A stretch of 64,000 nt of DNA from Macrostomum lignano (taxonomy: Eukaryota). Under the pieces are notes generated by a model. It was not told where the DNA came from, searched no databases, and worked only from the letters and a program-made list of their open reading frames with translations. Position numbers and translations under genes: made by a program. This document shows, in pieces, positions 198-62,966 of this stretch; within the stretch, counting starts at the first letter, position 1; the number at the start of each line of letters is the position of its first letter. The stretch covers positions 496,001 to 560,000 of the forward strand of contig NIVC01000319.1 in assembly GCA_002269645.1 (NCBI GenBank). The letters run 5' to 3'.

Positions 198-3100
198 TCG
201 CTGGTCGTCTTCGGCCAAGGCGACGCCGCCCCGGCCGAAGCCGCGGCCTCCTCGGCTTCAACGATTCCTCGGCCGCGCCAGCAGCAAACCTGCGGAGTCT
301 GCGGCGGCTCATTCGACAGTCTGGCCGTCCACCTGGGCGACAGCCTGAAGGAGTGCCCGCTGTGCAAGAAATTCGTGCCCGACAGCCGCTGCGCCCTCCG
401 AGCCCACTTCCGGCTGCACTTGTCCGCCCCGGGCCCGTGTCCGGAGTGCGGCGAGGAGGTGGCCCCGGCCACCGCCACCCAGCTGGAGCGGGAGGTGGCC
501 ATGCGGGTTCACCTGAGGTCGCAGTGCTTGCACCTGCAGCGCTCCAAGGTGTTCATCTGCCTGAAATGCGAGTACCCGCCCAGGGCTTTCTCAGCTCTGA
601 GGCAGCTGGCTGACCACATCATTCACAGTCACACTGAGAAGTTCTTCAAGTGTACCGTGTGCACCCTGGCCTTCAGGCACACCAACCAGCTGGCTGCCCA
701 CCTGGAGAAGGAGCACAACTCGCAGCTAACTGGTATGCGGCTTCTTCTTTAGCGGCCGTTCCCCAGTACTGCCCCACTGGATATGGTCCTATGAGCATGT
801 CCCATTGACCCTATAGATATGTCCCCATTGATCCTTTAGATAAGATGTGTCCCCATTGATCCTTTAGATAAGATATGTCCCCATTGATCCTTTAGATAAG
901 ATGTGTCCCCATTGATCCTTTAGATAAGATATGTCCCCATTGATCCTTTAGATAAGATATGTCCCCATTGATCCTTTAGATAAGATATGTCCCCATTGAT
1001 CCTTTAGATAAGATATGTCCCCATTGATCCTTTAGATAAGATATGTCCCCATTGATCCTTTAGATAAGATATGCCCCCATTGATCCTTTAGATAAGATAT
1101 GTCCCCATTGATCCTTTAGATAAGATATGTCCCCATTGATCCTTTAGATAAGATGTGTCCCCATTGATCCTTTAGATAAGATATGTCCCCATTGATCCTT
1201 TAGATAAGATATGTCCCCATTGATCCTTTAGATAAGATATGTCCCCATTGATCCTTTAGATAAGATATGTCCCCATTGATCCTTTAGATAAGATATGTCC
1301 CCATTGATCCTTTAGATAAGATGTGTCCCCATTGATCCTTTAGATAAGATATGTCCCAATTGATCCTTTAGATAAGATGTGTCCCCATTGATCTTCAGGT
1401 CCCTTGTTCTTGTCCTATGTACATCCCTCGGTCTTATGGACATGCCACCTCAGTCCTATGTACATGTCCCCTCGGTCCTATGGACATGCCACCTCGGTCC
1501 TATGGACATGCCACCTCGGTCCTATGGACATGTCCCTCTCGGTCCTATGGACATGTCCCTCTCGGTCCTATGGACATGTCCCCTTGGTCCTATGGACATG
1601 CCCCCTTGGTCCTATGGACATGCCCCCTTGGTCCTATGTACATGCCCCCTTGGTCCTATGGACATGCCCCATACATGCGCAACAGTCGGCCGAGTCGGCC
1701 GATCTGGCCGACCGATTTGGCAGCCAACCAAGGAAGTCGCAAAAATACCCACCTGAAAAATTACCCAAGTAGTAGTATTAAGTAGCTGACGAGACATTTT
1801 GGCTCAATAAGACAGTCATAGTTACTCCTGCCGTTTACCCAAAGTTGCGTTAATTTTGCTTTAGGGTTTTTTACATGTAAGTTGCATTTTTGGCCAAAAA
1901 CTACGTCGCATTTTTGTTAAAACTAAGTCGCATGGCCGACCGAATTTTGGAGGTTGCGCCTGTATGACATGCCCCCTTGGTCCTATGGACATGTCCCCTT
2001 GGTCCTATGGACATGCCCCCTTGGTCCTATGGACATGCCACACCAGCTGTCTCTATGCTAACCAGACAAAATGGTTCCAACTGCTGTCCGCAGGCAAGCC
2101 GGCCAAGATCTTCAAGTGCCCTATCTGCGACCTGATCTTCAACGACTCCAGCAACCTGGGCAAGCACCTGCTCACCCACCTGCCCCACCAGCTGTTCTGC
2201 AAGTCTGCCATGGCCTTTCGCTGCCTGGACAGTTGCCGCCAGATCTTCCTGGAGAAGAAGGGCCTCAAGCGTCACCTGAACACCTGCCGCAGCACGGTGG
2301 TCACCGACGCCAACCTGCCCTGTGTGCTCTGCGAAATCAACGTCAGCTTCTTCAACAACGTCGCCGAGCTGCGTTCGCACGAGGAGACCCACCTGAACCA
2401 AACCGCCGGCGGCTGGTGCCCCAACTGCGAGACCGAGGTGCCCGCCAACCTCCTGGACCACCTGCGCCAGGAGCAGAAGGCCAAGGACATCAAGGAGGGC
2501 CGCATCCAGGAGGAGCAGCAGAAGCAGGAGAAGCCGCAGAAGCAGCAACAGCAAGTGCAAGAGCCAAAGCAGCAGAAACCGGATGCAAAGCAGTCAGAGC
2601 AGCAGCAGCAGCAGCAGGTCAAGGTCACGTGCCACTGCGGTCGGGAAATGTCAGGCGCATCCGAGGTGGCCAAGTGAGTCTGGGAGTCTGAAATTTGAAA
2701 TTCGAAATTTCTTCGTAAGCAAAGCTTTAAACTAATTAGGTGGCGAGGCATTGACCCACCATAAAGGAGTTATATTTTCTCCCGCCTTGTACCCATGCAA
2801 TAACCGTAGCGCATGATTGAAATTGAACACCCATCGCCAGGCACACCTCGGAGGCCGCCCATCCCATCGTGCCGGAGGCCCAGCTGGTGAATCCGCAGTC
2901 GGGCCCCAGCGTGCTGTACCGCTGCCGCGACTGCCCGACTCAGCTGCCCTGCACTGAGCTCACCGAGCACATCTTTGCTCAGCACCCCGGCCTGTGCTAC
3001 CTGTGCAACTCAGCTCAGCGCAGCTCCGCCCACCTGCTGGCCTGCCTCCTGGCCGGTGCTCGCATGGAAGGCAGTCAGCTAGACGACGACGCCGGCGCCT

Positions 3101-5959: not shown

Positions 5960-6343
5960 TTTCTAAGAAACTGTCAGATTGGTCATTTTCACCTGTCCAT
6001 CATACGTGTGCTCAAGTACTGACTCATTTAGAGCTTCAACGCCAGCTCCCGTGGCACAAAATGACTAAAAGTTCATGCCAGTGTAGTTTTTCCATGCCGC
6101 AGTTATTGCACGGCGTACCTGAATTCTGCGTACGGCTGTTCAGTCCAAATACTGGGGGGTCGCCACACACAGCCTCAATTACCCCAGCTAATGCTGGCAC
6201 CCGTTTTACAGCTGGATGAACTGAAGCAATGGAGAGTTAAGTGGTCTTGCTCAAGGACACAAATTGTTCCAGTGGGATCGGGAATCGAACCCCCGACTTT
6301 CAAGTCCTGAGTCTGATGCTCTGACCACTAGGCTACAGCCCCC
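5960..6343 (-). mobile_element. tRNA-derived SINE with a CORE/Meta-like central domain
   Basis: The reverse strand reads GGGGCTGTAGCCTAGTGGTCAGAGC...GGGGGTTCGATTCCCGATCCC (Pol III A box TAGCCTAGTGG, B box GGTTCGATTCC), then TGTGTCCTTGAGCAAGACCACTTAACTCTCCATTGCTTCAGTTCATCCAGCTGTAAAACGGGTGCC. The 3' end is approximate. Confidence 0.75.
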
Positions 6344-17609: not shown

Positions 17610-19153
17610 TCAGGTGACGAAGGCCTTGACTGTCGCGAGGATGCCGGTGCCGCACGTCGGGCAGCGGCTGCGGTCGGCGATGCAGGCGGAGCAGGTGCGG
17701 AAGTGGGTGCAGGGCAGCAGCACCCGGTCTCTGCAGCGCCGCGAGCACAGCACGCACCGATCGCTTGCAGGATCGACCCCGTTGACCTCGCCGTTCGAGC
17801 TCGGAGGTGCTCCTGGGGTCGACCTGACGGTGGCGACTTGCTGGACGGTCGCCGGAGCAGCTGCTGGAGCGGCGGGAGCGGCGGCTGTCGCTGTTGCTGC
17901 CGAGGCTCCAGCCGGCGCCACCTCCGAAGGCGTCACGAGCCGCAGCAGACTGTCGACGCTGAAGTGGCCGATGACGCGGGCGGAGGCGCCGAACCGGGAC
18001 TCGCAGTCGTGCAGACAGTCGATGAAGCCGCCCGGCTTGTCGGGAAGCTGGCCGCCGTTGAGCATGAAGTGTCTCGTGGCCGCGAAGACGAGGCTGCCGC
18101 GGCTGAACCCGAACGACTCCGCGCTGGCGATGACGCGGCCGAGGCGGTCGAGCTCGCGGGAGAGCCGCTGCAGCGCCCGCCGGCTCCGGTCGGAGCTCGC
18201 CGACACCAGGCGAGTCGCATCCGCGCCGCCGACGGCTCCCAACGCGACGTCAAGCCGGCCGACGCTGCAGTCGGGACTCGCCGCCGCGTGAGCCGCCTCG
18301 GGCGACGCCGCGTCCGCGGGGACCTCCGCGCTGCAGTGGAAGCAGCGGAGGCCGCCGCCGCCGTCCGCCGAGAGGCCGGCCGCTGCTGCCGCCTCCGCAG
18401 CCTCGGGTCGCCTTCCAGCTCGGAGGTTCTGCGCGAGGCGCAGGTCGAACAGAGTCTCGGCGGGCCGTCGCGATGCCGTCACGATCAGCAGGAGGGCGCC
18501 TGAAATTCAAGATGAAATGCAAGCAATAAGCAATAAAAAATCGGGTGATTGAATTTTATGGTCGGAGCGTGCAGCGTTGCCATGGTTCTGACAAAGCTTG
18601 TCATTGTTGTTGCCAGACACACCCGCTAATCATGTAATGAGCCAAGTCCCATGCAGGCCTAGTTATTTTTGCACTGCAAAATGCATCATTTAAATACGAG
18701 CGTACTCTCCTTGGTGGTTATTTTTTCGAGTTCTAAAAACTGAAAATGAAACTACGAGCGTACGAGCTTGCAAAACGGTGCAGAGTTTCAGATTTCTTAT
18801 GCAGTGGACAATCATTTTTCAAAGAAGTGCAACTGAAATTTTTTAATTGCGTTCACTGCGTTTTTAGCGACTACGCTCGTAATATCGGTCTGTAGCTTGA
18901 AAAAGTGCAGCGCGGCAGCTGAGAAACTGCATGTTAAAGAAGAATTATGCAGAGACAAAAAGTCAGATTAGGGCAACACACACACAGTCACAACAATGAG
19001 TGACAGTTCTCAGTTACCAATTACGTAAACGAGAGCTCCTGCAGCGCTCTGACTCGCCTGTTGAAGCTGCAGAATGCCGTCAGCCAGTCGATGAGACCTC
19101 GCATCGCCGAATACCGGCTGGAGCTGGTCCGATATGGCGGCCGCTGTCGACAT
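17610..19153 (-). CDS. IAP-like protein (degenerate BIR plus C-terminal RING); main exon 18499-17610, proposed first exon 19153-19018 (341 aa)
   Basis: BIR ligands CFHC-x14-H-x6-C; RING CVLC...LLPCTHFRTCSAC...CPTC ending VKAFVT. Acceptor TTTCAG at 18500; phase-1 donor G|GTAACT at 19017. Exon 1 is less certain than the main exon. Confidence 0.8.
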
Positions 19154-24300: not shown

Positions 24301-27300
24301 GAGGTTTTCGAAGAGTTCGAAGCTTGATCCAGCTATACTAACTCCGAGCCATTCTCATCACACTTTTCCGATTCTAGTCCCTCGGCAGCGATAAGGTCGG
24401 AGAATTCCAGGGCAGCCTGGCTGGCGTCCGGGCTGTCCAATCTGAGACTTCACCGGTGAGCGCACTGGCCGGTCGAACCTGCTTTTAGATTTAATTGTGA
24501 CGGTTCCATTTGCAGAATACGAGCGTAAAAATTTCTCTTGTCCAGGGGCGTCGCCATGGATTTTATGGTGCGGGGGGGACAAAACCAAGAATTCTAGATG
24601 CACAGGACTAAATTCCTACATGTAAATTATTTTGAGAATCGGCGTTGCTAGCACTCATTATGGCGCCGCAGGCAGGCACTCATTTTGGCGCCGCAGGCAG
24701 GCACTCATTTTGGCGCCGCAGGCAGGCACTCATTTTGGCGCCGCAGGCAGGCACTCATTTTGGCGCCGCAGGCAGGCACTCATTTTGGCGCCGCAGGCAG
24801 GCACTCATTTTGGCGCCGCAGGCAGGCACTCATTTTGGCGCCCTGAAGCAAAATTATTGATTTCCACAACGGCTCACACGGTCGGGTGGGGGGGACAAAG
24901 GATTGGCGTGTCTTGGCCCCCATAGCTTTTACTGGGGCGGGGGGGGCATGTCCTCCGTCCCCCCCCCCCCCCCCGGTGGCGACGCCCTGTTCTTGTCCAT
25001 GTCTGAGTACCTGCCGCACTGCAAATCTCCTCCCCGATAGAACAGCGACGCCGTATCTCAGCGAGACGTGAAGCTGACGGTGCTGCAGAAGCGGCTGGCC
25101 AGCGCCAAGACCGAACAGGATCGCGTCATCCTCAGCTTCCTCATTCGGGAGCTTGAGACTGTGAGTTTGGAGAATGTATAAAAATACTAATTTTGTAACG
25201 TCAAATTTCCTTAGACGTCAATGCGATTTTCATTGATTCGAACAATTCAGAAAAACGCCAAGATCGCTCAAGTGTTCGATGACATCGTGAGAAAGTCGCT
25301 GACGGATCCCAGGCTGGCGCGCTATTTGAGGATGATCCGCTTCAGGCTGAACAACTTTGACTGCCACCACAGCGTGGTTGACGAGATTAACGAACGATGC
25401 TTCAATCTTGGACAGGTAAGAACGGTATTTCATGTTAGGGACATCTAATGACTTACTTGACTTAGCTGCAGGGCTGTCCCGGAGGGGACACAGCGGGAAG
25501 GCGCGGGCGCCCATTCCGCTAGTCCCTGAACGGCCGACGCGTCGCTATGGACGGAGGGTTGGCGCCGCCCAGGGAGGTCCCCCAGTGTCGCCAGCAGCTA
25601 TGGTGCTCTCTGGAAAGGAGAGTTCAGCCCTGCGGGTGGCCCGAAGGTAGCGCATGAGCTGATTAAAGTTTTCGGGTTTGCACGCTTCAGTAATAGATGT
25701 GTGTGGCCCGAGGTAAGTGAGTCTGGCCCGCGTGAAGGCGGGACAGATGCTGACGAAATGCTCAGCGGTTTCGTCACCTGAGTTGCAGAAACTACAGGTG
25801 GCGTTGGTGGCGTTGCCCTGCAGGTACTGGTGCCTGGAGAAGCAGCCATGACCAGAGAGGGTCATGGTGGCAGCCCGGATGTCTCTGCGCGAGAGGCGCA
25901 AGAGGAGCTTCCGGAGCTGGTGAGAGGGCTGAGGGACAGCGCCTCTGGATTGCCTGCAGTTCGTGCGGTTCGCCCAAGTCGAGCGGTGCTGAGTCCTAAT
26001 CCACGCTTTGATGCGCGAGTCGATGACACAGCCAGGAATCGGGACAAGAGGTTCGGGCCGAGAGAGGAGCCGGAGGCACCAACTTTTGCAAGGGTGTCAG
26101 CCAACTCATTTCCTCGGATCCCCACATGCCCCGGAACCCACTTAAGGGTAATTTTGTTGGCGGAACCCAACACATTGAGGAGTTTGATACAGTCAAGGAC
26201 TGTAGCAGAGTTGGTGCTGCAGCCACTGATGGCGTGCAAGGCAGCTTGGCTGTCCGAATGGAAAATGATGTTCTTACCAGTAACGCCAGTGGCGAGAAGC
26301 TCTGCAGTGCAGGAGCTGATTGCCAGAACTTCATTTTGGAAAACACTGGAGTTGACCCCAGTGTATTGAGCGTGGGTAGCGATGACCCTCCCGTTCAGAA
26401 AGATTCCAACACCAAAGCCGGTGTTGGCTGACTGCTTAGAACCGTCGGTGTAGCAATGAAGCTCACCAGGGTTCCAATGGTCATTGATGTTATCGCGCGA
26501 GTCGATAGCTACGGAGTAGCGCTGTCTCAGGTTGAGCGTTGAGGCAATGCCATCGGTGAAGACGCGATTGGCCTGACACTCGTTGAGAAAGTTGAGGCAC
26601 AGATCGCTATGTGGGACAAGGTTCCGCTTAGCAGGTGCTCTCATGTAAATGAATTTGACGCCGGCATCAATTAGACGCCGCGTCGTTCTAGCCGCCTCAC
26701 CCCTGATGAAGAGGTCAAGAGGCGGAAGATTAAGAAAGGCCCCATGCCAGCAAAGGGCGTGGACCTGGTGGCGTTGCAGATGAGCCTACACGCTCTGCCT
26801 TGGATCGTGTTGAGCAGGTCTGCATGGCTTTTGACCTGGGTAGCGCTAACCCAGACAACAGAGGCGTACGTAATGGCAGGTCTAACTACGGAAGTATAGA
26901 TCCACCAAAGCCGCTTTGGGGATAGACCCCAAGAAGTGCCAAGTGCTCGTCGGAGCTGGGCCAGGATGGCTGAGGCACGCTTAGCTTTTGCTTTCACGTG
27001 GAAGGACCAGTTGAGCCGGTGGTCAAGTGTGACCCCGAGACATCTGGTCTGGTGCGCGAAGGCAATATCTCTGCCGTAGAGCTGCAGAGGACGTATGTTC
27101 CAGCGTAGTCTGCTGGTAAACATAATGGCAACGGTTTTGGGCTCAGAGAGTTCCAAACCATTGTCATTGGCCCAGGATTCTGCTTTGCGGATAAAGCTCT
27201 GCATCAGATCCCTGAGCGTGCTGGGAGACGGTCCTGCCACAATGGCCGTGACGTCGTCAGCATACCCGACTTTGAAGACGGGGTCAGGTCGGGAGTCACT

Positions 27301-28377
27301 CAGAAGAGCGTCCATGACCAGGTTCCAGAGCGTCGGGGTGAGGACTCCGCCTTGGGGTCCACCCTTACAGACTCTGGTGGAGGCAGTTTGCCCAAGAAGT
27401 TGGGCAGTGACCGTACGGTTGGAGATCATGTACATGATCCACCGTATGAGGGTAGCATGAGCTTTGCGATTTTGAAGGGCCCTCTGAAACGCTTCAAAGA
27501 TAACGTTGTCGAAGGCGCCAACAATGTCAAGAAAGAGAGCCAGGGCGTAACCGTCACCCAGTACCGCCCGTTCAATCTTTTCGACAATCGCATGCAGGGC
27601 GCTGTCAGTCGACCTCCCGGTACGGAAGGCGTGCTGATTATTGCTGAGGGGCATCGCTGTCAGCTCGCAGGAGAGCAGCCGCCAGAGAATAAGCCTCTCA
27701 GTGAGCTTAAGCATTGCTGACGTTAAGCTAATTGGCCGGAAGGCCTTGACGCTTTGGTAGTCACCCTTCCCAGGTTTGGGAATAAAGACTACTCGAGCTT
27801 CAGTCCAGCTTTTGGGAACGTATCCCAGCTGGATAGAGGCCCGCATAAGATTGCTCTGGACATCTAATGGCTCTGGATTCGACTTTTGATTCCTTTAAGT
27901 CGATGAGGGCCAATGATCCCAAAGACACAGAGTAGGTACAACACCCGAAAGACGAGTGTTTGTAACCTGGAGTACTGAGGTTTGCAACCTGGAGTAATGA
28001 GGCTTGCAACCTGGAGTACTGAGGCTTGCAACCTGGAGTACTGAGGCTTGCAACCTGGAGTACTGAGGCTTGCAACCTGGAGTAATTAGGAGTACTGAGG
28101 TTTGCAACCTGGAGTACTGAGGTTTGCAACCTGGAGTACTGATGCTTGCAACCTGGAGTACTGAGTACCACCTGCTTCGATCCTCGCTGAGCATGCAACA
28201 GCACCTGAAAACCCTTAGATCGAATAGCTGCCCAAACCCGAATGAACCCTTCTGTTTCAGACCGAGGAGGCGCTGCGCCACGTCTACAAGGTGGTCAACC
28301 TGTGCGAGTCCCGCGTGCCAACCGACAGAATTGTGGCCGCGGTGCGCGAGGTCTGCGGCGATAATTTCCGGCTATGA
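21394..28377 (+). CDS. LGMN: Legumain / asparaginyl endopeptidase (C13), about 444 aa; exons 21394-21585, 22358-22455, 22546-22626, 22721-22861, 22944-23076, 24076-24284, 24378-24455, 25041-25160, 25251-25415, 28261-28377
   Basis: Signal peptide; [31 protein letters not shown], catalytic DHG and [23 protein letters not shown]. One extra C is needed at 22549-22551 to restore E-N-P-T-K-G. Confidence 0.95.
21664..21985. repeat. 15-bp minisatellite (CTGGTGCTGGCGCCC)n in legumain intron 1
   Basis: About 21 units. Confidence 0.95.
23405..23990. repeat. 42-bp minisatellite (CCAGGAGTGCGTAGCTTCTTAACAAGCTCGCTTAACATTGAT)n
   Basis: About 14 units, intronic. Confidence 0.95.
24543..24989. mobile_element. 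hAT-like MITE with an internal 25-bp tandem expansion
   Basis: TIRs CAGGGGCGTCGCCA and TGGCGACGCCCTG; 8-bp TSD CTCTTGTC / TTCTTGTC (7/8); internal (CATTTTGGCGCCGCAGGCAGGCACT) x~8. Confidence 0.8.
25451..27857 (-). mobile_element. 5'-truncated non-LTR retrotransposon (RT + RNase H + C-terminal zinc knuckle; R1/I-group-like), antisense in the last legumain intron
   Basis: RT motifs [26 protein letters not shown]; RNase [38 protein letters not shown]; LSGHG...CSFC...[11 protein letters not shown]. 12-bp TSD GGACATCTAATG at 25439-25450 and 27858-27869; short AAGT(C) repeat tail. Confidence 0.95.
27955..28165. repeat. 22-bp minisatellite (GCAACCTGGAGTACTGAGGYTT)n
   Basis: About 9 units. Confidence 0.9.
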
Positions 28378-55075: not shown

Positions 55076-55388
55076 GAATCATGGACCCTTGGAATCTGCC
55101 TGGACTGGACTGGGGGCTTTCTGTAATGAATTTAGAAATATCATGACATGGTTCCGGGGTTCGATTCCGCTCGCTTTTGCACCCTGTCTGAGTGCGTCCT
55201 AGGTTCGATTCTGCAAGCTTTTGGACCCTGTCTGAGTGCGTCCTAGGTTCGATTCCACTAGCTTTTGGACCCTGTTTGAGTGCGTCCCAGGTTCAATTCG
55301 GCGTGGTTTCCTTGCCCTTCCGCTTTGCTTGTATTTCGGCTCCCTTCCCAGTCCAGTCCAGGATAGCTCTCCAGAGGTCCGCGATTCC
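55076..55388. repeat. Fold-back / MITE-like element with internal tandem units
   Basis: Perfect inverted repeat CCTGGACTGGACTGGG (55099-55114) / CCCAGTCCAGTCCAGG (55347-55362), extendable imperfectly outward. Confidence 0.55.
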
Positions 55389-57297
55389 AATTGGTTTATT
55401 TGATTAACAGTGTAAAACAGATGTAGCTAGCTATTTTTTGTCTATAAGTAGAGTATTGCGCGTTTTCTGTTTTTTCGCTCTTGATATTTAGCAGATTCAT
55501 CAGTATGGGTAAACGGTTTCACTGACCTTGTCAACAGCTCTCGCGAGCCTCGTTTTTTGTTATTGATTTTCAATCAGACAGCGCTGTCATTATAAATACA
55601 ATTTAATAGTAAACGCGTTGCATTTTCAAGTCTATTACAGTTTCACTCGGCACCTGTTGTAACTGCCTCATCAAACAGCCTGCGGAGTTTTCGAGATTTT
55701 GTTGCTTAATTCAACAGAGGCTCGAGTGCTGCGCCTTTCCTTCGCTCCCGGTCTCAGCTGGTTGTCGGTTTCCTGAGCTTTCAAAGATAATGAAAGAGGC
55801 CTGAAAGAGGTGCCAAGAACCGATTTGGATCGCTCTGCTTCGATGCTTTTATCGATTAATCAGATTAGTTTGAGTCGCAACTCCTTGGCTTTCGGTTTGT
55901 TTCCGAGACACCTGGTCCCAATTGCAGACAGAATTGTGGCCTCACTGCCTTGTCCTGTTAGTGGCAATGTGAATCTGCCACTTGTCTGCATAGAGAATCT
56001 GCCACTAATACTCAGCAACAGTCAAAAGGTTCCACCCACTAAGCGAGATGATTTTTTCACTTATCGCGAGTGACGCAACTTACGGCACGCGCAAAGCTTA
56101 TTGCCGCTTGGAGGTGGTTTGGGTCTGCTTAATGGTCCAGGATGACAACGTGCCGCCACACCAAACCGATGCTGTTAGTCAACCGAAAGAACAGCTACAG
56201 CTGCGCACTCTTTCATCTCGTTTTCATCTCGCTTGGAGGGTGGAAATTTTCAGTTGCTGAGTATATTTTACTTTGGGAATCTGGCACTTATCTACCTCGG
56301 GGAATCTGCCACCTAGCCACTTGGAATGGTTCCATAAGAAACGCCAGTTGTCATGGCACAGCAAAAAGTGCAAACATTTTTAGCGTCCTAATCTATTTCA
56401 TCCCGGATGGATCTTACGCGTCTGTCTGGAGCTCTGACATCTCATGCTTATTAATCAACCAACAAGCGACATGTTATCACGCAGAAGTTAGCTAAAACAA
56501 TGCTGCATGTGCATGTGGCTAATACGGTTGGTTGGGCCTTGGCCAAGCGAGTATGCAGTCGCTCCATGATCAGATCTGAGTGCCCAACCCCACCCCCATG
56601 GGACCAGCCGTTCTGAAACGTGAGGGCGAAGTAGATTAGAGAGAGAAAAGCTGCACTCAAAGAAAAGCTGTGAGGTCGGAGCTCCTCTCGCATCGACCGG
56701 CTAAGGAAGCCCCAAAACTATGGGATGCGGCAATGGTCTCGCGAGCTTTCGACGCGCAGTTATCCGGGCATTTTCTGTCTTTTTATCCCGCATTAGTTCA
56801 TCGGGCTGCTAATGAGTGACAGTGGAAGTTGGAGCAATTAGCAGGGCTAATAAATAATTCCTTTGATAACGTTTAAAAGACAAGAGCAGGTTTGACTTTG
56901 GTAGTCTGCAGCAATCAGTGCCGAACGCAAGGTCTTTGAGAAAGTAATCGAACGTTATTGGAAATGCCTAAACTTGATTGCTTTGCATCCACGAGCTCAC
57001 TTAGCTCAGAAAATAATTAAAGACAAACTCGAGCTGTTCGATAGTGTGGATTCGCAGAGCCTCGGGTTGGCAAAATTTTGACCATCGTGGCGTGAAGGTG
57101 AGCCGAAACTGACCTGCGCAACTTGTTTCACATGGCTTAGCAGTTGGGGGGGGGGGCTATTTAGGTTGCAATGTCAGTGTGAGACAGTTACGCAAATTTT
57201 GCTTGAACTTTCGGTACTTTGCTCTTAGTTACATCGACCGGTGCTGCGCAACCAGCTCGGACAGACTGGAGCCGTCGGAGGCGTCCGGCAAACTCCT

Positions 57298-57984
57298 TTA
57301 TCTTGAACGCTTGCCGAACATTCCGCCGTTGAACCGCTTGCCGAACATTCCTCCATTAAAGCGTTTGCCGAACATTCCGCCGCTGAATCGCTTGCCGAAC
57401 ATTCCTCCATTAAAGCGTTTGCCGAACATTCCTCCATTAAAGCGTTTGCCGAACATTCCACCGTTGAATCGCTTGCCGAACATTCCGCCGTTGAACCGCT
57501 TGCCGAATATTCCGCCGTTGAACCGCTTGCCGAACATTCCGCCGTTGAATCGCTTGCCGAACATTCCGCCGTTGAACCGCTTACCGAACATTCCTCCATT
57601 AAAGCGTTTGCCGAACATTCCACCGTTGAATCGCTTGCCGAACATTCCGCCGTTGAACCGCTTGCCGAACATTCCGCCGTTGAACCGCTTGCCGAACATT
57701 CCGCCGTTGAACCGCTTGCCGAACATTCCGCCGTTGAATCGCTTGCCGAACATTCCGCCGTTGAATCGCTTGCCGAACATTCCGCCATTGAACCGCTTGC
57801 CGAACATTCCGCCGTTGAACCGCTTCTCTTGGAGCCCACCATGCTCTTGGCTGTGCGAAGCCTCTCCGTCTACGGCGGTCTTGACCTCTTGCTGACCTCT
57901 GCAGCTGCCGCACGAGGCGAGCGCAGCAACGAGCAGCGCGCACAGCAGGCACTCGCTGCTGAAAACCACTCTGCACAGCCGCAT
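57298..57984 (-). CDS. Neuropeptide precursor: signal peptide plus 19 x [peptide-G-KR] (17 FNGGMFa, 1 FNGGIFa, 1 FSGGMFa), 228 aa
   Basis: MRLCRVVFSSECLLCALLVAALASCG signal peptide, acidic spacer, dibasic sites with amidation Gly, and synonymous variation among the 27-bp units. Confidence 0.93.
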   Translation of the reverse strand: MRLCRVVFSSECLLCALLVAALASCGSCRGQQEVKTAVDGEASHSQEHGGLQEKRFNGGMFGKRFNGGMFGKRFNGGMFGKRFNGGMFGKRFNGGMFGKRFNGGMFGKRFNGGMFGKRFNGGMFGKRFNGGMFGKRFNGGMFGKRFNGGMFGKRFNGGIFGKRFNGGMFGKRFNGGMFGKRFNGGMFGKRFNGGMFGKRFSGGMFGKRFNGGMFGKRFNGGMFGKRSR

Positions 57985-59213
57985 CAGGTCTTCACTTCGC
58001 AGTGGAAAATTCGACGAAGTGCTGATGGTTGTCGGTTGGCCTCTTCTGCTCAAATCGATTTTGAGAAAGCGATAGAAGCGCAAAATTTCAATAGCAGCCG
58101 ATGCTTTTTGTCTGCACGGATCTGTGACAGGAGAGCATCAGTAGTTGGTGCGCGCAGGCCTCTCCTGGAGACCAAGTGACTGGGCATTGGCGGTCGCGGT
58201 TCTGGCGAATCGCGGCGCTGATGAGGCTCAGAGGCTGCGCCTATGTCTTGGCTTGGTTAATAACCGGATTAATGCTCTAATGCATATTTAATCCTTATTT
58301 TATGAAGTGGCTTCAGTTTGTCGGTGTGTTTTGGTTGCATGTATGAATTTAAAAAAGGTGACAATGAAGCCACTACAAGTACGGTTTTGATGCGAGACTC
58401 GCGAATGCATTATAGGTTCGCGAATGCATTACGAAGATGTACGTACAGACTGGGATGCATGATGCACTAGCACATGAGAAACTGTAACACTAAGCAGCAG
58501 GCTGCCTGACTTACTGCTGCTGTCCTGAATCTTGGGCTAGGCCCTTATCTTTGAAGTTGAAAACAAAGAACACCTGCTTGCACCATGGGAGGAGTTCCCA
58601 CTCGGCAAAGGGAATAAAAGTGTAGCTCACCTGTGTTGCCAGGAGACGACCTGACTCTTGAATTTAGCTTTTGCAGTCCTAAAGTTTCACTTACAAAAGC
58701 AGAGAGAATTCAAAGCTTCTCCCAGTTCCTTTCTTTTTTCCAAGGCAGACTCGCGAGCCCGCAGGCTTTGACCAGGAGAAGCCTGCAGGCGGGGAAAGCA
58801 TGTAGCCACTTGCCTTGCCTTTGGCCTATTATACAGTGAGCCGCTGTCACTCTGGAAAGCGCAACAATTTGCAGCAGTATGCTCGCGTGCACCGGCAGAC
58901 TGCGGCCCAGATTATGCCTATCGCAGGGTTCAATAGTTCCTCAACTTCACGGAGCTTTTCTGAAGTTCCCAACTCGAGGTCTAAAGATACTTTTGTGTGC
59001 ATGAGAGACCAATAGATAGACACAAGCGCAGTGATGAGAAAGATATAGAGTGGGAGAAATAAAGATAATTGAGAGTTTAGGATTGAAAGGGAGAGCTCTG
59101 CTATAAACTCAGCGTCAGCGGCAATAAGTTCAATATCGCAATTCCCCCACGCACGGACAAAGTCAACACAAAATACAGGCTGAAACTGGCGCTAAGGCCA
59201 CGGTATACCATGC

Positions 59214-61647: not shown

Positions 61648-62966
61648 TCAGGCGATCACTTTCCCCCGCCGCAGCTCCAGCAGCTCCTCGCAGCCGCAGT
61701 CCAGCAGCTCGCCGAGCACCTCGTCAGTGTGCTCACCCAGCCTGGGCGGCGGCCGCGTCACTTCACCGCGCCGGCCGTCAAAACGGACAGCGGGACCCGG
61801 AGCGGTGACCCGGCCGGCCGCCGGGTGCTCGCAGGTGACCAGCAGGCCGCTGGCCGGATCTGCCACCGGCGGGCTGGCCAGGGCCTCCGCCACGGTGTTC
61901 ACCGGGCCGTACGGCAGGTCGGAGCCCTCCAGCGCCGCCAGCCAATCCGCCAGCGGCCGGGCGCGCACCAGGGCCTGAATTAGCGGGATCAGGCTCGTCC
62001 GGTTAGCAACCCGCAGCCGGTTGCTAAGGAAGCGAGGATCCGTTGCTAGGTGGGGAGCGCCGAGCCGGCGGCAGAGGACGCCGAATTGGCGGTCGTTGCC
62101 GGCGCCCAGGATGAGTTGGCGGCGGTCGCTGGTGTCGAAGGCCTGGTAGGGCGCGAGGTTGGCGTGCCCTGTGCCCCAGCGGCTCGGCTCCTGGCCTTCG
62201 AGGGTCGGTGGGTTCTGTGACGGACAGACAGACAGACTGACTGACAGACAGACAGACAGACTCTGAGCCCCTCACCGGTGTGCAGGAAGCTGGCAGCCAC
62301 ATGCGACATGGTGGCCACCTGGGTGTCCAGCAGGTTGGCGTCGATCCAGCAGCCCCGGCCGACCTCCCCCAGACTCTCGGCCGTCCGCCGCCGGTACAGG
62401 GCGGCCAGGATGGCGGACAGGGCATACAGGCCGGTGGACAGGTCCGTGACGGCCACCCCGGCCCGGACGGGCGGACCGTCGGGCTCCCCGGTGATGCCGA
62501 GGAAGCCGCCGATGGCAGCCGCGGCGACGTCGTAGCCGGCCCGCCGGCGCCACGGCCCGGACTGGCCGAAGCCGGAGATGCTGCAGTAGATGAGGCCGGG
62601 ATTCTGGGCGCTCAGCGAGGCAAAGTCCAGCCCGCGCTTCGCCAGCTTGCCGGGCACGAAGTTCTCCAGCAGGACGTCGCAGCGCCGGGACAGCCGGCGG
62701 ACCAGGTCGGCCCCGGCCGGCTGGCCGAAGTCCAGGCAGACACTGCGCTTGTTGCGGTTGACACTCAGGAAGTACACGGAGTCCTCGGCCGCGAACGGCG
62801 GCCCCCACTGCCGGGTCTCGTCCCCGCCGCCCGGCCGCTCCACCTTGATAACATCTGCGCCCATATCGCCCAGGATCATTGAGCAGTAGGGCCCGGCAAG
62901 CACCCGGGTGAGGTCCAGGACTCGAATCCCGGCTAGGGGCCGGTGGGCACTGATGGGGACTGGCGG
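61648..62966 (-). CDS. SUGCT: Family III (CaiB/BaiF) CoA-transferase, succinate-hydroxymethylglutarate CoA-transferase-like; exons 62966-62276 and 62195-61648, N-terminus unresolved
   Basis: PLAGIRVLDLTRVLAGPYCSMILGDMGADVIKVERPGGGDETRQWGPP, NRNKRS, GYDV, GVAVTDLSTG, APYQAF, PPRLGEHTDEVL; phase-1 intron 62275-62196. Confidence 0.92.

Follow-up and report, generated by a model that had tools for sequence, protein, structure and literature searches.

We describe a neuropeptide precursor gene candidate of the flatworm Macrostomum lignano, located on the minus strand of a stretch of 64,000 nucleotides (contig NIVC01000319.1 of assembly GCA_002269645.1, positions 496,001 to 560,000 of the forward strand), which as a whole is referred to as the window. 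The locus very probably represents a genuine precursor gene. The best explanation overall, which we regard as likely, is a single-exon gene for a secreted precursor carrying many copies of the hexapeptide FNGGMF-amide, with the SIFamide/NLP-10 system as the best guess for its family; this placement, drawn from sequence comparison, is tentative even if the gene is taken as real. Strong support for FNGGMF as the selected product comes from a second gene family of the same genome, Mlig004279, because two genes with unrelated flanks encode the same hexapeptide.

The open reading frame (ORF) runs uninterrupted on the minus strand from an ATG at 57984-57982 to a TAA at 57300-57298 (Table 1). Its anatomy, i.e. 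signal peptide, acidic spacer and 19 KR-flanked units ending in Gly, had been proposed in the original prediction and was borne out by translation and by Tandem Repeats Finder (TRF), which places the array at 57303-57825 with a period of 27, 19.4 copies and 0% indels. All units (19/19) read KR-x6-G and are followed by KR. The predicted products are 17 FNGGMF-NH2, one FNGGIF-NH2 and one FSGGMF-NH2, which is exactly the tally predicted. The N-terminus, judged by rule only, has the organization of a signal peptide: it opens with a basic n-region, MRLCR, that contains two basic residues, continues with the hydrophobic core CLLCALLVAALA and closes with an A-L-A-S motif for cleavage between Ala and Ser. 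Kyte-Doolittle hydropathy reaches a maximum of 3.11 (residues 12-20) and a mean of 2.31 (residues 6-23). The spacer of 30 residues is rich in Glu and Asp, has a net charge of about -3 and a mean hydropathy of -1.26, and HGGLQE at its end resembles a degenerated repeat unit. No convincing TATA box was found upstream of the gene.

Table 1. Parts of the putative FNGGMF-amide precursor gene; positions are those of the window.
Feature	Position	Strand	Description
Complete coding sequence (CDS) of precursor	57298..57984	-	228 aa, ATG to TAA, single exon; same in GenBank contig NIVC01000319.1 (L001/L004)
Signal-peptide-like N-terminus	57916..57984	-	residues 1-23, MRLCRVVFSSECLLCALLVAALA
Acidic spacer propeptide	57826..57915	-	residues 24-53, SCGSCRGQQEVKTAVDGEASHSQEHGGLQE
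Array of 19 x 27 nt	57313..57825	-	every unit KR-FNGGMF-G type, head-to-tail, directly abutting
Unit 12	57502..57528	-	ATG>ATA, encodes FNGGIF
Unit 17	57367..57393	-	AAC>AGC, encodes FSGGMF
Array end	57298..57312	-	incomplete unit with 1-nt loss (AAGCG-TTCAAGATAA), translated KRSR-stop
Probable 5' untranslated region (5' UTR)	57985..58104	-	120 nt, no ATG in any frame

In the course of standard prohormone processing, the signal peptide would be removed after about residue 23, a convertase of the PC2 type would cleave after each Lys-Arg, an enzyme of the carboxypeptidase E type would trim the basic residues and peptidylglycine alpha-amidating activity would convert the C-terminal Gly to an amide. 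The yield per precursor would be 19 hexapeptides, 17 of them FNGGMF-NH2 with a calculated [M+H]+ of about 671.30. Expression would be expected in neurons, and the peptides would be released from dense-core vesicles to act on a rhodopsin-type G protein-coupled receptor. If the family guess is correct, this receptor would be of the NPFF/SIFamide type, i.e. of the kind of NPR-35 of Caenorhabditis elegans. By analogy, the peptides may modulate locomotion, feeding or attachment.

Coding constraint, strand and annotation of the array

In the FNGGMF frame, eight of the ten variant types present in the array are synonymous, where 21-25% would be expected of random substitutions (binomial P about 1e-4 to 5e-4). 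The synonymous alternations affect Lys (AAG/AAA), Arg (CGG/CGA/CGC), Phe (TTC/TTT), Asn (AAC/AAT) and Gly at two positions (GGC/GGT/GGA and GGC/GGT); all alternations previously listed are present, AAC/AAT being an addition. Within the window-type family, synonymous variants were found in 1-6 units, and the replacement variants (N>S, M>I, G>E) each occupy a single unit per array. When all six gene copies were pooled, the synonymous fraction was 9/13 (P about 2e-4 to 1e-3). Broken down by codon phase, variant types of the 27-mer array distribute as 0/11/2 (P about 6e-4 for phase bias), and there are no indels. The other minisatellites of the window served as control: of 11 further arrays with a period divisible by 3, one is invariant and none of the ten with variants is phase-biased, which bears out the contrast with the surrounding repeats drawn in the original prediction. 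The array is under coding-type constraint, unlike these other arrays. An excess of synonymous changes and a phase bias unique among the minisatellites of the window point to purifying selection on the peptide sequence; the even spread of variants and the frequent indels of a minisatellite were not found in the 27-nt array.

The step from synonymous changes to selection on the peptide itself, as made in the original prediction, holds for coding constraint, but it does not distinguish the strand. On the plus strand, an ORF encoding (LPNIPPLNR)n spans window positions 57179-57895, and 9/10 variant types are synonymous in it. The substitution pattern shows coding and not strand, because third codon positions coincide between this frame (PNIPPLNRL) and that of FNGGMF. 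Such shared third positions on opposite strands are a general trap for arguments from synonymous changes in repeats. However, no in-frame ATG is present for the plus-strand frame between the preceding stop and the array. The minus strand is settled as coding by its ATG, which is the first of the transcript region, the signal-peptide-like start, the KR/Gly logic and a gene call, together with the lack of an ATG in the plus-strand frame.

The gene is already part of the GenBank annotation of NIVC01000319.1, which has an unnamed, 5'-partial product of 268 aa without Pfam match on the minus strand. An exact look-up of the 228-aa product gave no match because GenBank holds the 268-aa form. The GenBank CDS takes in the 40 codons of 57985-58104 as coding. 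These probably represent 5' UTR, as they provide no ATG and as indels disrupt their frame in the syntenic copies of the gene on NIVC01003500.1 (L005) and NIVC01001389.1 (L006), where the matching stretch lies in a different frame. The annotation is based on stranded RNA-seq transcript assemblies and TransDecoder, with non-coding and repeat-overlapping transcripts removed (PMC5730564). Gene calls of this origin in the sense orientation at three loci speak indirectly for sense transcription, and the gene model of the window reaches into unique 5' sequence beyond the array.

Relationship to known peptide families

The original prediction could not place FNGGMF-amide in a known family and compared it with tachykinin and fulicin, among others. 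Two other systems proved to be much closer than tachykinin or fulicin: when anchored at the C-terminus, the peptide is 5/6 identical to NLP-10 of C. elegans and 4-5/6 identical to arthropod SIFamide. NLP-10 (SIFP-1) is encoded by a multi-copy precursor with four peptides (PMC11532408), NLP-10-1, -2 and -3 being AIPFNGGMY, STMPFSGGMY and AAIPFSGGMY (supplement of PMC11532408). NLP-10 activates NPR-35/SIFR-1, a receptor of the NPFF/SIFamide family, and is regarded as the SIFamide orthologue of nematodes. The identity of 5/6 is ungapped and pairs FNGGMF and FSGGMF with FNGGMY and FSGGMY, the flatworm peptide ending in Phe and NLP-10 in Tyr; FSGGMF of unit 17 corresponds in this way to the C-terminus of both NLP-10-2 and NLP-10-3. 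Asn and Ser alternate at position 2 in both systems, and both precursors are multi-copy. However, the NLP-10 peptides carry an N-terminal extension of 3-4 residues (AIP-, STMP-, AAIP-), whereas the flatworm peptide is a bare hexapeptide in 12-31 copies, and NLP-10 belongs to an ecdysozoan nematode, whereas flatworms are spiralians.

Arthropod SIFamide ends in ..PPFNGSIF-NH2, as in TYKKPPFNGSIF-NH2 and GYRKPPFNGSIF-NH2. Its C-terminus FNGSIF-NH2 is 4/6 identical to FNGGMF and 5/6 identical to the FNGGIF unit; the Phe is amidated in SIFamide and predicted to be so here. At sequence level, FNGGMF carries the ecdysozoan C-terminal motif FNGxxF/Y-amide, with amidation predicted. The precursors differ in architecture: in arthropods, one 12-residue peptide directly follows the signal peptide and a Cys-containing C-terminal peptide completes the protein (PMC5627052; Tribolium sequence), whereas the flatworm precursor has 19 copies behind a spacer and lacks a tail with Cys.

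Among spiralians, Platynereis SIFamide-1/-2, molluscan FFamide and nemertean SIFa/FF end in ..LLFa and ..NMNSLFFa, and their precursors contain two peptides directly after the signal peptide and a conserved Cys pair downstream. These animals belong to the same superphylum as flatworms, and their peptides share the C-terminal Phe and some of them also an Asn located five residues ahead of the amidated terminus. For flatworms themselves, Koziol and colleagues (2016) reportedly found SIFamide orthologues in parasitic species, and cestode Attachin is said in the title of a 2022 report by Preza and colleagues (J Neurochem; cited in PMC11196405) to be a SIFamide homologue that stimulates motility and attachment. 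Both groups are also said to have found most flatworm neuropeptide families to be unlike those of other animals.

Searches for relatives covered protein and metagenome collections. With the whole precursor as query, no match at E<=0.01 was obtained in a collection of 5.8 billion protein clusters, and even the Mlig004279 paralogue was missed. An incomplete query consisting of the N-terminus and three units matched only Mlig004279 and one chance metagenome sequence. When 1.84 billion representative proteins were searched exhaustively with phmmer, 607 matches were obtained, with a single meaningful relative, again Mlig004279 (P0125). The others, as far as the 36 of highest identity or shortest length among the 150 matches listed are concerned, were set aside as unrelated repeat proteins or as neuropeptide precursors sharing nothing but KR/G periodicity, such as those of the YQPMFV-amide and NPGIW-amide types, among others. 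FNGGMF units were also absent from JGI metagenome contigs, where degenerate-DNA scans gave 0 matches.

Three small proteins of 106-123 aa (P0156, P0256 and P0272, the last from a JGI contig) combine a stretch of hydrophobic residues at the N-terminus with repeats like PRFNRGMF and RFNGGMF. Dibasic or Gly processing sites are absent from them, and their likeness to FNGGMF is probably due to chance or composition.

The literature was searched as well. No relevant paper naming FNGGMF or GGMF-amide was found, although a prior description is possible in flatworm peptide surveys beyond that literature. Neither the catalogue of planarian peptides (Collins 2010) nor its supplements contain the strings GGMF, GGLG, LFFG or FNGG, and GGMFG is absent from the xenacoelomorph and nemertean/brachiopod/phoronid neuropeptide catalogues, so that the catalogue check called for in the original prediction turned up no FNGGMF-type string. 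FNGGMF-amide thus appears to be undescribed in the literature searched, as had been supposed, but the gene is not new as such, since GenBank has it as an unnamed product and a second gene family encodes the same peptide.

Several points weigh against a SIFamide/NLP-10-type precursor gene. As regards the gene, Glu11 is close to the hydrophobic core of the putative signal peptide, and no canonical AATAAA or ATTAAA is found within 500 nt downstream of the stop, in which Mlig004279 differs. The array of the window could also attract, by multi-mapping, RNA-seq reads that stem from the near-identical arrays of Mlig004279. As regards the family, FNGGMF is only 1-2/6 identical to SIFamide/FFamide of Platynereis, molluscs and nemerteans. 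Whereas SIFamide precursors have one or two copies directly behind the signal peptide, the 19 hexapeptides follow a 30-aa spacer, and instead of the conserved C-terminal peptide with its Cys pair, the precursor ends in KRSR-stop after the array. As regards the gene again, no homologue beyond M. lignano was found in the 1.84 billion proteins, the 5.8 billion clusters and the JGI contigs, which probably include few flatworm transcriptomes. Finally, and again for the family, six-residue motifs like FNGGMF can arise by convergence.

The last two points are the ground for the strongest alternative, in which FNGGMF-amide is an invention of Macrostomum or of flatworms and its likeness to NLP-10, SIFamide and buccalin reflects convergence in a short Gly-rich aromatic motif. 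A precursor architecture unlike that of both SIFamide and allatostatin-A precursors fits this explanation, as do the lack of relatives beyond M. lignano in the collections searched and the reported dissimilarity of most flatworm neuropeptide families to those of other animals. Nevertheless, an ungapped identity of 5/6 combined with the Asn/Ser alternation of NLP-10 exceeds, by informal judgement, what is usually shared by chance, and we consider a lineage-specific origin possible but doubtful.

FNGGMF-amide could also be a member of the allatostatin-A/buccalin family with Met in place of Leu and an extra C-terminal Phe, signaling through a receptor of the allatostatin-A/galanin type, which we judge to be unlikely. 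A loose likeness to this family had been noted before, and it stands for the FNGG core but fails at the C-terminus. Nemertean allatostatin-A precursors are multi-copy, with ..RFNGGL-G-KR, ..RFSGGL-G-KR and ..MFSGGL-G-KK (supplement of PMC8557429). They share with the flatworm precursor the spiralian background, the FNGG/FSGG core (4/5 after a shift by one residue), the KR/Gly sites and the many paracopies, 19 in the present case. Moreover, the liver fluke has allatostatin-like receptors, ligands being unreported in flatworms as of 2018 (PMC6114109). However, allatostatin-A/buccalin peptides end in GGL-amide, whereas the flatworm peptide has GGMF, is one residue longer and is predicted to end in Met-Phe-amide; neither (Y/F)xFG(L/I)-amide nor the spiralian FxGGL-amide is found, and identity is 1/6 when anchored at the C-terminus, the end that usually activates the receptor. 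In addition, peptides of this family have 8-12 residues and are separated by acidic spacers, as in the nemertean precursors, whereas the units of the window are bare hexapeptides that abut. Tachykinin (FxGLM-amide or FxGxR-amide), RFamide (RF-amide) and fulicin (D-amino acid at position 2) do not account for the predicted C-terminus MF-amide either; that the peptide is not an RFamide had been stated correctly.

Syntenic duplicates and the second gene family

The genome of M. lignano DV1 is partly duplicated (PMC5730564), and the syntenic duplicates L005 and L006 are both called as genes. Gene order is conserved in the duplicates and comprises a thioredoxin-domain gene, a GatC-like gene, a CoA-transferase gene, the precursor gene and, on the opposite strand, a gene encoding about 400 aa. 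The two precursors have 12 units each, of which 11 encode FNGGMF and one FNGEMF. They share start, signal peptide and KRSR-stop with the window gene, and the spacer differs only by T36A. Several indels separate the flanks, which are about 98% identical, whereas the CDS is free of indels. A dN/dS comparison was set aside as uninformative, as the 159 nt of unique CDS contain a single difference against flanks of about 98% identity. One rare unit, AAA CGC TTT AAT GGA GGA ATG TTC GGC, deviates from the consensus unit at five positions, all synonymous; it predates the split of the 19- and 12-unit arrays, since it is present in both.

The second family consists of Mlig004279 g1/g2/g4 (PAA64743.1, PAA89184.1, PAA90071.1; P0125, P0271), annotated as hypothetical proteins with the same FNGGMF between KR sites. 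The loci L002 (NIVC01001722.1, 10001-11045) and L003 (NIVC01000162.1, 10001-10965) contain 31 and 28 units, respectively, whereas the annotated protein has 5 FNGGMF units only, because 'introns' interrupt the array in the models. GenBank models are therefore wrong in detail in both families, with 5' UTR taken as CDS in the window gene and 28-31 units collapsed to 5 in Mlig004279. The flanks are unrelated to those of the window gene: the signal peptide MASRHILVLGAVAAILASIPFCSLA, the spacer, the UTRs and the C-terminal peptide FDGNMHPSFLDYITQNPTQD, a tail of 20 aa without Cys, are all different, the ATG is preceded by a TATAAATA box and the stop is followed by an AAATAAA signal. The N-termini of the two precursors gave no BLASTP alignment even at E<=100. 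At DNA level, likeness is confined to the array, in which the consensus units differ at 1/27 nt. Variation between Mlig004279 units is found at third positions (GGT/GGA/GGG) and as FNGVMF in two units per array. Units of 26 nt (GGGGG>GGGG), which would shift the frame, occur twice in L002 and once in L003; they are probably homopolymer errors of the long-read assembly. Sharing of the array by the two genes may reflect capture or continuing conversion between loci.

The relationship to Mlig004279 raises an alternative that concerns the window copy alone, namely that it is a non-functional or marginal chimeric duplicate, whose array was copied from Mlig004279, or converted by it, and joined a chance ATG and hydrophobic stretch, leaving Mlig004279 as the sole source of the peptide. 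Confinement of the likeness to the array, the unrelated flanks, the missing canonical poly(A) signal near the stop, the frameshifted partial unit at the array end and a genome saturated with minisatellites are all compatible with this scenario. It is nonetheless improbable, given that the window-type array has synonymous unit variants of its own (e.g. AAA CGC TTT AAT GGA), which are absent from L002 and L003; constraint has therefore acted within the window-type lineage. In addition, the gene is intact in three copies with differing unit numbers, all of which are RNA-seq-based gene calls. That the 27-bp array is a non-coding minisatellite which is open by chance, or that the plus-strand LPNIPPLNR frame is the coding one, is hardly credible: minisatellite arrays do number about 30 in the window, with a period divisible by 3 in several of them, and a stop-free 27-mer leaves several frames open, the plus-strand frame being 9/10 synonymous, but phase-restricted variation was found in the 27-mer array alone, ATG, signal peptide, KR/Gly logic and gene call are all on the minus strand, and Mlig004279 encodes the same peptide in the same frame, led by an ATG and a signal peptide.

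Returning to a genuine precursor of the SIFamide/NLP-10 type, a bolder proposal can be made, in which flatworms possess in FNGGMF-amide their orthologue of SIFamide/NLP-10, with an FNGxxF/Y-amide motif that is ancestral to protostomes and was lost by annelids, molluscs and nemerteans, while the 27-bp array is a mobile, expandable module. We regard this proposal as rather unlikely. If true, a coding array would have been captured by, or would be converting between, separate loci with 12, 19, 28 and 31 units and unrelated flanks, and through array mobility new neuropeptide genes could arise and peptide dosage could change rapidly. Two unrelated genes sharing one coding array at these copy numbers constitute a clean case of minisatellite dynamics under selection. 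The link to SIFamide/NLP-10, if true, would join the ecdysozoan and spiralian branches of the family and complement cestode Attachin. M. lignano is a flatworm model amenable to transgenesis and RNAi, whose peptide signaling is barely catalogued. As the peptide is simple, synthesizable and probably abundant, and as a receptor hypothesis can be stated (SIFamide/NPFF type versus allatostatin-A type), deorphanization and knock-down are feasible.

Other features of the window

A gene 4 kb away from the precursor gene, at about 61648-62954 on the minus strand, encodes a CoA-transferase of family III (SUGCT-like; GenBank Mlig016554g3). The protein is 99% identical to a M. lignano protein and 55-60% identical to animal and bacterial relatives, and it led to the syntenic duplicates. 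Over the full window (1-64000), TRF returned 68 rows corresponding to about 30 distinct minisatellite arrays, whose periods range from 11 to 51 bp and many of which have 10-87 copies; this density fits the 15% of simple and tandem repeats reported for the M. lignano genome. A 44-bp tandem repeat at 55158-55299 (also L001:17656-17797) has a unit containing GGTTCGATTCC, which resembles a tRNA T-arm, and may be derived from a tRNA or a short interspersed element (SINE). An Rfam tRNA match at 6273-6342 (minus strand) scores 33.6 bits, barely above the gathering score, and was not called by ARAGORN. Two adjacent ORFs at 25862-27846 (minus strand) encode reverse transcriptase (RVT_1, E 1e-28) and RNase H (E 7e-12) and represent a retroelement remnant or copy. 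Finally, ORFs with C2H2 zinc-finger and C3HC4 RING-finger domains at 1964-2677 (plus strand) and 17610-18482 (minus strand) may be exons of ordinary genes.

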